Below the pieces are notes generated by a model, which was not told the DNA's origin, did no database searches, and worked only from the letters and a program-made list of their open reading frames with translations. From Octopus sinensis (taxonomy: Eukaryota), in assembly GCF_006345805.1 (NCBI RefSeq), contig NC_043019.1:4029360-4093359 (forward strand): 64,000 nt of DNA. Direction: 5' to 3'. This document shows, piece by piece, positions 1,198-57,543 of the stretch. The translations under genes and the position numbers were made by a program. The stretch's first letter is position 1, and every line of letters begins with the position of its first letter.

Positions 1198-1462
1198 GCA
1201 GGAAATCTCCAACAGCCTGACATATTTTCATGACGCTTTGGATATCTACAACCAGATAAACCCAAATTTCATTGGAAGGATCACTGTCATTCACGCAATT
1301 GCTCACTGCTATCTGCTGAAAGAGGAATTCGATAAAGCCAAGATTATTTTTCAGGACATATTGAATGGTAACACCGACCATTTGTTGAGCAGCGTATCAG
1401 AGGTTGAAGTTTTCTCAATGGCCTTCGAACACCTGGTTTATCTCAATTTGGAAAACCCTCAG
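1198..1462 (+). CDS. Copy A exon 9 homologue (upstream paralogue; 5' part outside the window)
   Basis: Same 265-nt length and splice sites as 31899-32163, open frame; 25 of 88 aa differ from copy B. Confidence 0.8.
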
Positions 1463-1964
1463 GTATGGTTAATTATAGCATGTATTGTAATTGTTGATTG
1501 ATTGCGGGATTCATTGATGATTGACAGATTGATGGCTTGATTGATGGATATATGGGTTGAGTGAAAGATGGAGGGATAGATTAATGCAGTGGTTTTAAAC
1601 CTGGGTCTACATGACCCTTAGGGGCTCAAATAAGGTTCTGTTACAATTTATGTGCAATAAATTGGTTATACTTCTAAAATACAAAAAAATATTTTAACAA
1701 TTTTTTTAATACAATAACCAAGTGCCCCAGCATGGTCACAGCCTTAGGGTTGAAATGTATAAAAGAATAAAAAAATAAAAGAATGGGATTTTTTAAACAT
1801 TGAATGGTTAAGAAGATCTCTTTGAGTAAAATAGGAACCAAAGTGGTCCAGAGGGCAGAAAATGGTTGAGAGGCATAGGATTAATGGAAGGATGGGTTGG
1901 TATGACTTCTTCATTCTTCAAGTAGCTGCTACCGTGAGGAATTTTATTATGATATGTCAGCTAA

Positions 1965-2630
1965 AGAAGAGCAAGCTGGCAGAATCGTTACTGTACCAGG
2001 CAAAATACTTAACAGATTTTCGTCCGTCTTTACATTCTGAGTTCAAATTCTGCTGATGTCAGTTTTACCTTTCATCCTTTCGGGGTCAATAAAATAAGAA
2101 CCAATTGAGCAGTGGGTCGATGTAATCAGCTTTCCACCCGATTCGTTGAATTGCTGGCCTGTGCCAAAATGCGAAATCAATATTATTCTCTGTATTAAGG
2201 TGTCAAACAGGTAGAATCATTAGCATGCTGGGCAAAATGGTTATTGGCATTTCGTCCGCCTTCCCGTTCTGAGTTCAAATTCTGCTGGAGTCTGTTTTGC
2301 CTTTTGTTCTTTGGGGGTCAAAAAAATAAGTACCAGTTGAGCACTGGGGTTGATGTAATTTACGCTCACTCCTGAAATTGCTGGCCTTGTGCCAAAATTT
2401 GAAACCATAGCGATATGTCAGGTTAGGGCCTCAAGATGACAGAATCGTTACCTTGCTAGACAAAATACTTACCAGTTTTGCTCCTGGCTCTTTTATGTTC
2501 TCAGTTCAGATACTACCAAGGTTGACTTGGCCTTTCATCCTTTCAAGGTCAATAGAATACCAGTTGAGTACTGGGGTCAATATAATTAACTAAACCATTC
2601 GTCCAAGTTTTCAGGCTTTGTGCCTATAGT
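1965..2630 (+). repeat. Cluster of degenerate S3-related SINE copies (also about 20705-20900, 29195-29860, 33755-34420, 50690-51350, 55285-55950)
   Basis: Recurrent gctggcagaatcgttag...ttctgagttcaaattc...tttcatcctttcggggtc...aagtaccagtt. Confidence 0.75.
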
Positions 2631-55900: not shown

Positions 55901-56037
55901 AATATAATTAACTAAACCATTCGTCCAAGTTTTCAGGCTTTGTGCCTATAGTAGGAAAAAATTATGTCAGGTATCTCGGTCCTCCATTGGTTTTGGTAAT
56001 TCCTAAGTTTCGTGAAGTGCCTCCCAACCAATTACAT
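43969..56037 (+). repeat. Segmental duplication 2, second copy
   Basis: Starts tgggtaggctcc (equals 22465); diverges from the first copy where a SINE array begins at 56041. Confidence 0.9.
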
Positions 56038-57543
56038 CAATGGCAGAAACGTTAGCACGCCGGGCAAAATGCTTAGTAGTATTTCGTCTGCCGCTACATT
56101 CTGAGTTCAAATTCCGCCGAGGTCGACTTTGCCTTTCATTCTTTCGGGGTCGATTAAATAAGTACCAGTTACGCACTGGAGTCGATATAATCGACTTAAT
56201 CCATTTGTCTGTCCTTGTTTGCCCTCTCTGTGTTTAGCCCTTGTGGGTAGTAAAGAAATAGGTATTTCGTCTGCCGCTACGTTCTGAGTTCAAATTCCGC
56301 AAGGTCGACTTTGACTTTCATCCTTTTCGGGGTCGATTAAATAAGTACCAGTTACGCACTGGAGTCGATATAATCGACTTAATCCGTTTGTCTGTCCTTG
56401 TTTGTCCTCTCTGTGTTTAGCCCTTGTGGGTAGTAAAGAAATAAGGATTTCGTCTGCCGCTACGTTCTGAGTTCAAATTCCGCCGAGGTCAACTTTGCCT
56501 TTCATCCTTTCGGGGTCGATTAAATAAGTACCAGTTACGCACTAGGGTCGATATAATCGACTTAATCCGTTTATCTGTCCTTGTTTGTCCTCTCTGTGTT
56601 TAGCCCCTTGTGGGTAGCAAAGAAATAGGCATGGTAGTTTCCAGAATGTATGAGATCATCTCTCATGTATGAGTGATATTAGAATTCTAAAGCAACTTCT
56701 CTTTGGCCATTTTCCAGCAGGAATGTCTGTTGGAAGGCCACTCTTGTTCTTCAAAGACAAACTAAAAGAAAATATGAAGCGATGCAACATTCCATTTTTC
56801 TTCCTGGGAAAAAAAAGCATCAGAACATAGGACCTGGTGCCAGTCCTGCTTCTCAGTTCTAAGATTTGAGCAAAGTCAACTCCAGCATCAGAACGATGCT
56901 AGTGCTGCTTGATTGGCTCCCCGTGCTGGTGGCACATAAAAAGCCCCATCCAAACGTGGTCAGTGCCAGCGCCACCTGACTGGCTCCCGTGTTGGTGGCA
57001 CGTAAAAAGCATGAATTACACTCTCAGAGTCGTTAGCATTAGGAAAGGCATCCAGCTGTAGAAGCCTTGCCAGATCAGATTGGAGCTTGGTGCATCCTAC
57101 AGGATTGCCAGTCCTCAGTCAATCCGTCCAACCCATGCCAGCATGGGAAACGGACGGTAAATGATGATGATGAAGATAATATATATATATGTTGCTTAAT
57201 TTCACTTTCTTTTTATTTCTAGAACCAGCTGTTTCATTTGGAGAATCTTTTGAACGAAATTAGACAACTATTGAAACGAAGTGTACATGAGAAACACAAG
57301 CTACGATATTCCGATGCTATTGCCAAGTACCAGTCCTTGAAAATACTCCTGGTAGATAAACTCAACCGAAAGGAAGAACGGGCTGGACTCCTCATGGACT
57401 CAATCCCTGTTCTTTGTCATCATTGCAAGAGTTTCATTCGTTATTTTAAATGTTCTCGAGAAAATTATATTCATAAACTTTGCGGACTGAGATCTAATTC
57501 ATATGAAATCGATATTCAACAACGATTAAAGATTGTAGAATAA
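47027..57543 (+). CDS. Copy C: 5'-truncated TPR-only paralogue (exons 4-10), frames intact
   Basis: Exons 47027-47174, 48290-48399, 49925-50038, 50459-50602, 51381-51492, 53418-53682, 57223-57543; same lengths and splice sites as copy B; no homologues of exons 1-3 between 43.97 and 47.0 kb. Expression unknown. Confidence 0.7.
54066..55016 (-). mobile_element. Mariner transposon, duplicate of 32535-33485
   Basis: Same TIRs, TA TSD and length. Confidence 0.92.
56041..56627 (+). repeat. Head-to-tail array of SINE S3 (3 units, ~183 bp)
   Basis: Units end at 56260, 56443 and 56627; only the first has the 5' head. Confidence 0.85.

Follow-up and report, generated by a model that had tools for sequence, protein, structure and literature searches.

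Animal proteins that join a nucleotide-binding oligomerization domain (NOD) to tetratricopeptide repeats (TPRs) are known from Hydra, Acropora and amphioxus (PMC7642931, PMC2246300), and this architecture is held distinct from that of bona fide NOD-like receptors (NLRs), which combine NACHT with leucine-rich repeats (LRRs) (PMC3879445). In cephalopods, immunity mediated by pattern recognition receptors was called obscure in a 2024 review (PMC11359984). We examined a 64,000-nt stretch of the Octopus sinensis genome (assembly GCF_006345805.1, contig NC_043019.1, positions 4,029,360 to 4,093,359; hereafter the window), in which we analysed LOC118767588 (hereafter gene 1) and its copies. In our best explanation, to which as a whole we give a probability of about 0.8, the window contains one complete gene, LOC118767588, which encodes a divergent NB-ARC-type protein of the STAND class (signal transduction ATPases with numerous domains) with TPRs and without an N-terminal signalling domain, together with two partial copies; it is a piece of a lineage-specific octopus tandem array, with the duplication history given below.

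The window is AT-rich DNA of animal type, rich in repeats, and its positions 5389-64000 were 100% identical to the locus at 4,034,748-4,096,902 of CM016881.1 (L003). We rebuilt the model of gene 1 from scratch, picking splice sites by open frame and by agreement with homologues, and obtained 10 GT-AG exons on the + strand (2577 nt, 858 aa), exactly the 10-exon, 858-aa gene of the initial annotation. The spliced product was identical to RefSeq XP_036368269.1 (P0080), listed as "uncharacterized protein LOC118767588 isoform X1" of Octopus sinensis; gene 1 is real and already annotated in RefSeq, but unnamed. Exon 1 (15389-15568) carries the start codon, the FVGR motif and Walker A (GLPYVGKT), while exon 2 (17612-18637; 342 aa) encodes Walker B, the GLPL-like motif, helical domain 1 (HD1), the winged helix and the first helical repeats. 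Exon 3 (21164-21320) closes the part of the gene that lies in the non-duplicated segment U. The TPR array is encoded by exons 4-9 (25522-25669, 26814-26923, 28434-28547, 28968-29111, 29887-29998 and 31899-32163), and the last exon of isoform X1 is exon 10 (37381-37701).

Residues 1-340 form a divergent NB-ARC-type STAND module with the order nucleotide-binding domain (NBD), HD1 and winged-helix domain (WHD). All the motifs that had been read from the sequence at the outset were located in the 858-aa protein: FVGR at residues 22-25, Walker A (GLPYVGKT) at 48-55, Walker B (FCIFDDF) at 110-116, CGLPGLL at 201-207 and YFPGRF at 274-279. The protein thus contains the two signatures of a P-loop NTPase, a Walker A of the form GxxxxGK[ST] and a Walker B of the form hhhhDD/E, and the succession of NBD, HD1 (ARC1, GLPL) and winged helix (ARC2) was recovered both in the Apaf-1 profile alignment and by AlphaFold and Foldseek. 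When 25 aligned NODs of the family were compared with Pfam, NB-ARC was matched at E<=1e-3 by 15 of the 25 (best 7e-12), NACHT by three and NPHP3_N by two, and the homologues P0017, P0020 and P0026 scored above the NB-ARC threshold (26-32 bits). The family NOD profile found Apaf-1 as its top match among the PDB sequences (4.8e-13; Apaf-1 residues 124-448), in an alignment that covers NBD, HD1 and winged helix and reaches the LHD/"MHD" position; it was followed by NRC1, Roq1, NRC4, Sr35, ZAR1, PH0952 and AfsR. Structure models were made on P0080 and on its paralogue P0001. The AlphaFold model of the NOD of P0001 (95% identical; 42 diverse sequences) had a predicted local distance difference test score (pLDDT) of 86.9 and a predicted template modelling score of 0.80, and its best Foldseek matches in the PDB were CED-4, the active Apaf-1 apoptosome, PH0952, NRC1/3/4, ZAR1 and Sr35, with template modelling scores of about 0.5 for CED-4, Apaf-1, NRC and ZAR1. 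In the full-length model, built on 13 close sequences, the NOD was poor (pLDDT 35-60). A Pfam scan of exon 2 alone and of small TPR open reading frames (ORFs) gave nothing useful.

The helices that follow the NTPase, described as TPR-like in the initial annotation, are indeed TPRs. TPR_12 was the sole Pfam family above threshold on the whole protein (1.9e-17), and the full-length AlphaFold model shows a confident TPR solenoid of 22 helices over residues ~340-800. This part consists of about 11 hairpins, followed by a tail of about 100 residues. Foldseek with the full-length model retrieved kinesin light chain (KLC), LGN, OGT and other TPR proteins together with the STAND-TPR protein PH0952, and phmmer with the whole protein against the PDB found KLC-type TPRs only. 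The tail encoded by exon 10 (residues 753-858) is helical in a low-confidence model and has a conserved CxxC, and no known domain matched it.

The third feature of the protein is its short N-terminus. About 20 residues had been predicted ahead of the NTPase, with an in-frame stop just upstream; the count is 21 residues before FVGR, and a TAA lies in frame at 15377, 12 nt 5' of the ATG (15389). All octopus paralogue models in RefSeq begin at the same methionine (MATPYRL), and the N-termini are also short in the Argonauta proteins and in a 1195-aa ORF on Logan-assembled contigs (~4-5 kb). Among the 55 remote homologues, Walker A was found at residue 27-50 in most; exceptions are Lottia P0023 (an N-terminal extension of ~240 aa), P0026 and P0051 (shorter extensions) and bacterial proteins fused to BTAD or kinase domains. 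An AG at 15386-15387 is a possible acceptor for an exon of the 5' untranslated region, and a search for an upstream coding exon between 11.7 and 15.4 kb (3.7 kb 5' of the ATG) found low-complexity ORFs only. No death-fold domain of Pfam matched the gene 1 protein, which does not have the CARD that characterises Apaf-1 and CED-4. With a shared start methionine, Walker A near the N-terminus of the homologues and no upstream coding candidate, the proposed lack of CARD, death domain (DD) and TIR held up: an N-terminal effector domain is absent here and in most of the family.

We compared this architecture with that of the known systems. Apaf-1 and CED-4 were the best profile and structure matches and have in common with the octopus protein the NBD-HD1-WHD order, Walker A, Walker B and a GLPL-type motif. 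They bear, however, a CARD, and Apaf-1 WD40 repeats, whereas the octopus protein has no CARD and carries TPRs in place of WD40; they are also single-copy, in contrast to the multi-copy tandem arrangement in octopus, and differ from the octopus protein at the sensor-1 Arg (Gly in octopus) and the WHD His (Gln in octopus). The octopus genes fall among the NB-ARC/NACHT-TPR proteins known from cnidarians and amphioxus, which have the same architecture and likewise show large lineage-specific expansions; in gene 1, as in these metazoan proteins, the STAND NOD is followed by C-terminal TPRs in one polypeptide. Many of the cnidarian and amphioxus proteins bear an N-terminal Death, DED, CARD or TIR domain, while the octopus genes have none, and the octopus/mollusc clade, unlike them, is too divergent for a Pfam NB-ARC call on the protein alone. 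Plant NLRs (NRC, ZAR1, Sr35, Roq1) resemble the octopus genes in the NB-ARC fold and its motifs, in forming tandem clusters that include truncated members, and in having repeats that diverge faster than the NOD, but they carry LRRs and a coiled-coil, TIR or RPW8 executor, whereas the octopus protein has TPRs and no executor. Prokaryotic STAND-TPR proteins (PH0952, AfsR/SARP, kinase-NB-ARC-TPR) show the same order of NOD and then TPR, and PH0952 appeared in both sequence and structure searches; they bear, however, N-terminal DNA-binding or kinase output domains, and their identity to the octopus protein is very low. PADLOC returned a generic TPR match and weak P-loop matches only, with no tie to a bacterial defence system. 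An assignment to NLRs sensu stricto (NACHT-LRR) was rejected, as the protein gave no NACHT and no LRR match, and its C-terminal half is a TPR solenoid. The octopus genes belong to a known kind of receptor-like protein and do not represent a new kind of system.

The initial annotation had described the window as a cluster of NB-ARC-TPR genes, with two paralogous copies of gene 1 in the same orientation. Two copies are present on the + strand, but both are fragments and neither has an NB-ARC, so that the window contains one gene, the 3' end of a neighbour and an orphan TPR half-copy. We found no support for a second NB-ARC in the window and rejected it: tblastn, exon-wise blastn and a six-frame search with the family NOD profile found only exons 1-3 of gene 1. 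The upstream copy comprises the last two exons of LOC115223655, whose start is beyond the window: exon 9'' (1198-1462, +), which shares 86% identity with its gene 1 counterpart, exon 9, and exon 10'' (5630-5948, +), which equals exon 10 of gene 1 apart from two 1-bp deletions at about 5757 and 5824. These deletions create a premature stop, and RefSeq accordingly has a 795-aa LOC115223655 product, with its coding sequence ending at ~5761. The downstream half-copy (47027-57543, +) consists of exons 4'-7' (47027-47174, 48290-48399, 49925-50038, 50459-50602) and exons 8'-10' (51381-51492, 53418-53682, 57223-57543). It has an open frame throughout, keeps every AG/GT site and is identical to gene 1 at 380 of 404 residues, without exons 1-3.

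These copies follow from the segmental structure of the window. Segment A (1688-11728) matches A' (33484-43970) at 97-98.5%, and segment B (22462-34506) matches B' (43966-56037) at 97.6%; between A and B lies segment U (11729-22462), the unique part of the repeat unit, whose exons 1-3 encode the entire NOD. The order is A-U-B-A'-B'-tail in the O. sinensis assembly and A-U-B-tail in O. vulgaris, where the orthologous locus (L004) is collinear up to a retrotransposon beyond the tail and has each of the 10 exons once; an extra block of 21.5 kb (B + A', 22463-43970) is absent there. The A'|B' junction (43966-43970) is a clean fusion, with a possible 2-bp (TG) microhomology on reading the three printed sequences. 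Since the single exon set of the O. vulgaris orthologue ends in an exon of the 10' type (98.8% identical to exon 10'), the ancestral gene 1 was composed of U, B and exon 10'. Exon 10, which is 99.4% identical to exon 10'', is therefore a copy brought in by segmental duplication. In the simplest history, a tandem duplication of [A-U-B], ~32 kb long and with breakpoints in intron 9, would have been followed by a 10.7-kb deletion that removed the second U with its exons 1-3. Gene 1 would thereby have gained a copy of the last exon of its upstream neighbour, the one used by isoform X1, and an intact orphan TPR block (exons 4'-10') would have been left downstream.

The open frame and the intact AG/GT sites of exons 4'-10' also raise the question of whether this block is alive and serves as an alternative sensor cassette, exon 3 being spliced to either exon 4 or exon 4'. 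The two exons are compatible, with phase 1 both at the end of exon 3 and at the start of exon 4', and the ratio of nonsynonymous to synonymous substitution rates (dN/dS) between exons 4-9 and 4'-9' was 0.25; this value comes, however, from 12 substitutions, and the copy is too young to show decay. RefSeq isoform X2 ends in sequence of exon 10', so some transcript evidence reaches 57.5 kb, but it is spliced from the middle of exon 10 into the middle of exon 10', a join that resembles a mis-alignment of two nearly identical exons. Exons 4'-9' are used by no RefSeq isoform, and the block is absent in O. vulgaris. We therefore regard a living alternative cassette as improbable, and the fuller version, in which one NB-ARC-like switch would be served by two block-duplicated TPR cassettes (exons 4-10 or 4'-10') spliced from exon 3, as slightly more improbable still. 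If it were true, two-cassette splicing would give a cephalopod a means of varying the recognition part of an NLR-like receptor that has no effector domain.

The same comparison with O. vulgaris bears on the assembly. A'-B' might be a second haplotype, carrying a 10.7-kb deletion and placed in tandem, and the frameshifts of exon 10'' might be consensus errors of long reads; the locus would then hold, like that of O. vulgaris, two complete genes side by side. The single A-U-B-tail of that species, the 97-98.5% identity of the duplicates and the state of exon 10'', which differs from its O. vulgaris orthologue (L005, where exon 10 of the upstream gene is intact) by one substitution and two 1-bp gaps, agree with such an error. 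On the other hand, no N run occurs in the 64,000 nt of the window, the A'|B' junction is clean, a divergence of 2-3% with many indels is high for alleles, and duplication at the level of exons is found elsewhere in the cluster, as in the doubled last exon of O. vulgaris LOC115223560 (L002; 30377-30697 and 30935-31252, ~560 bp apart in tandem). We consider an assembly artefact unlikely, though it deserves clearly more weight than the alternative cassettes, and retain the duplication and deletion described above as the preferred history.

Gene 1 is one of a larger group. At least eight related loci span at least 230 kb of CM016881.1 (LOC118767588, LOC115223560, LOC115223561, LOC115223655, LOC115223659, LOC115223652, LOC115223660 and LOC115223564), LOC115223561 lying 126 kb downstream of the window, and additional relatives were found on unplaced O. 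sinensis scaffolds. The cluster products are full-length (856-858 aa) or truncated, and the paralogues have a common 10-exon plan. In O. vulgaris, at least four loci were found on both strands at 42.31-42.62 Mb of the chromosome. With segmental duplications and doubled exons as well, the proposal of a tandem, recombining, multi-copy family, as opposed to a single-copy orthologue, was borne out. We made none of the observations that the initial annotation had named as speaking against it. One of the cluster loci, LOC115223659 (601/565-aa products; reading through the exon-5 donor into the intron), has a range on the minus strand that encloses all of L003; no minus-strand exons of the family were found in the window, so either the genes are nested or the model of this one is doubtful.

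An exhaustive HMMER search with P0001 recovered 55 relatives, from Argonauta, the gastropods Lottia and Batillaria, the bivalves Pecten and Solemya and the hemichordate Glandiceps, and paralogues of the gastropod Gigantopelta came to light in a subsequent profile search. The most remote homologues were bacterial BTAD- or kinase-NB-ARC-TPR proteins. Between gene 1 and its O. vulgaris orthologue, dN/dS was 0.46 for the NOD, 0.42 for the TPR region and 0.26 for the tail; against the upstream paralogue the values were 0.33, 0.70 and 0.98, respectively. Between paralogues, identity is 85-90% in the NOD but 53-66% in the TPR region. The genes are under purifying selection, and the repeats and tail are less constrained than the NOD.

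Several of our results weigh against the reading that we prefer. The gene 1 protein scored 15.9-17.6 bits against Pfam NB-ARC (PF00931), below the gathering threshold of 23.5, and all matches of its NOD or of the whole protein to NB-ARC, ATPase_2 and AAA_16 were sub-threshold; the NB-ARC call of the initial annotation thus stands at the level of the family profile and the structure model, but not for the protein taken alone. The position of the sensor-1 Arg (RNBS-B 'TTR') is occupied by Gly149, and that of the winged-helix 'MHD' His by Gln322. Pairwise dN/dS gave no sign of positive selection (0.25-0.98; small counts), a search of the accessible literature by LOC identifiers and for molluscan NB-ARC-TPR proteins found no paper on these loci or this clade, and none of our results ties the family to immunity. 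Finally, the 2-3% divergence of the duplicates is about that between O. sinensis and O. vulgaris, and errors of the assembly may underlie the 21.5-kb block as well as the two 1-bp deletions.

The two residue changes can be placed within the family. The sensor-1 Arg and the 'MHD' His are conserved in NB-ARC proteins, though not universal, and across 25 family members they were retained in ~7 and 12, respectively. The octopod members carry Gly at the sensor-1 site and Gln at the 'MHD' site, and many other family members retain Arg or His. Because of Gly149 and Gln322, the nucleotide cycle may differ from that of Apaf-1, and we name the module NB-ARC-like and divergent rather than canonical. In plant NLRs, changes in 'MHD' are activating, so the resting state of the octopod proteins may also differ.

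The selection and literature results also fit a STAND-TPR scaffold with a cellular role unrelated to defence, comparable to that of NPHP3 in cilia, whose tandem expansion would be neutral turnover. NPHP3 resembles the octopus protein in being an animal P-loop STAND protein with KLC-like TPR_12 repeats and no death-fold domain, but its gene is conserved as a single copy and encodes additional N-terminal domains. The lack of an effector domain, the KLC/NPHP3-like character of the TPRs and every pairwise dN/dS being below 1 are in line with such a scaffold; NPHP3_N scored 15-17 bits on the gene 1 protein (threshold 24.8), and TPR_NPHP3 in the homologues remained far under its threshold of 100. 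Against it, the NOD is nearer to NB-ARC than to NPHP3_N in the family comparison, CED-4, Apaf-1 and NLRs rank first in the structural comparison, and a lineage-specific tandem expansion with truncated copies and faster-diverging repeats is the usual NLR-like signature. Moreover, the cnidarian NB-ARC/NACHT-TPR expansions were interpreted as innate-immune (PMC7642931). A non-immune scaffold appears to us about as doubtful as the assembly artefact, and we keep a receptor-like protein as the preferred reading.

By analogy with Apaf-1, CED-4, plant NLRs, MalT and PH0952, the gene 1 product is most likely a ligand-gated nucleotide switch that oligomerises. In the off state, the TPR array would hold the NOD inactive and act as the ligand-binding sensor; binding of a ligand would permit nucleotide exchange at the intact P-loop and then oligomerisation. 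Because no effector domain is fused to the protein, the output would pass through the surfaces of the oligomer or through a separate partner; the sensor-type intracellular receptor, possibly in need of a helper, that had been suggested at first is likewise an analogy. Ligand sensing, oligomerisation and a role in immunity or cell death are what we infer from these analogues only.

The window also contains a number of repeats and mobile elements. A local duplication of 605 bp (15943-16547 and 17060-17664, 96.9% identical) has placed a decoy start of exon 2, namely the acceptor and the first 53 nt of the exon, at 16495-16547 (+), and the same decoy was found in O. vulgaris (11119-11171 of L004). 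An LTR (long terminal repeat) retrotransposon occupies 57949-63547, with 393-bp LTRs at 57949-58341 and 63155-63547 (98% identical) and + strand ORFs, split over several frames, for gag (DUF7041), aspartyl protease, reverse transcriptase, RNase H and integrase. The same element lies at the orthologous place in O. vulgaris, so that its insertion predates the species split; there it is annotated fused to a TPR gene as a 981-aa product. A 183-184-bp unit, probably a SINE-like (short interspersed element) or satellite-like element, occurs in ~3 tandem copies at each of 7745-8278, 40018-40569 and 56079-56629 (the last inverted), beside duplication boundaries, and a 378-bp interspersed repeat (~92% between copies) was found twice per A-type segment (3480-3856, 9261-9638, 35220-35596 and 41552-41929). 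Upstream of exon 1, segment U contains a 19-bp minisatellite (CAGTGTTATGATATAATCT; 12198-12748) of 29 copies with 95% match. Two kinds of intronic fragments were also detected: an ORF for a GIY-YIG endonuclease, which may derive from a Penelope-like element, at 23852-24142 (-) and 45349-45639 (-), duplicated along with block B, and the C-terminal fragment of a DDE_3 (Tc1/mariner-type) transposase at 19480-19752 (+).

Because its NOD falls under the Pfam thresholds and its RefSeq label is "uncharacterized", this family is missed by standard annotation. The locus illustrates clearly how segmental duplication can shuffle exons inside a cluster of this type. To the NB-ARC-TPR proteins of cnidarians and amphioxus the family adds a clade of bilaterians, and its members, as NB-ARC-type STAND proteins with TPRs and without an effector, are a defined set of candidates for studies of expression and of the response to challenge.

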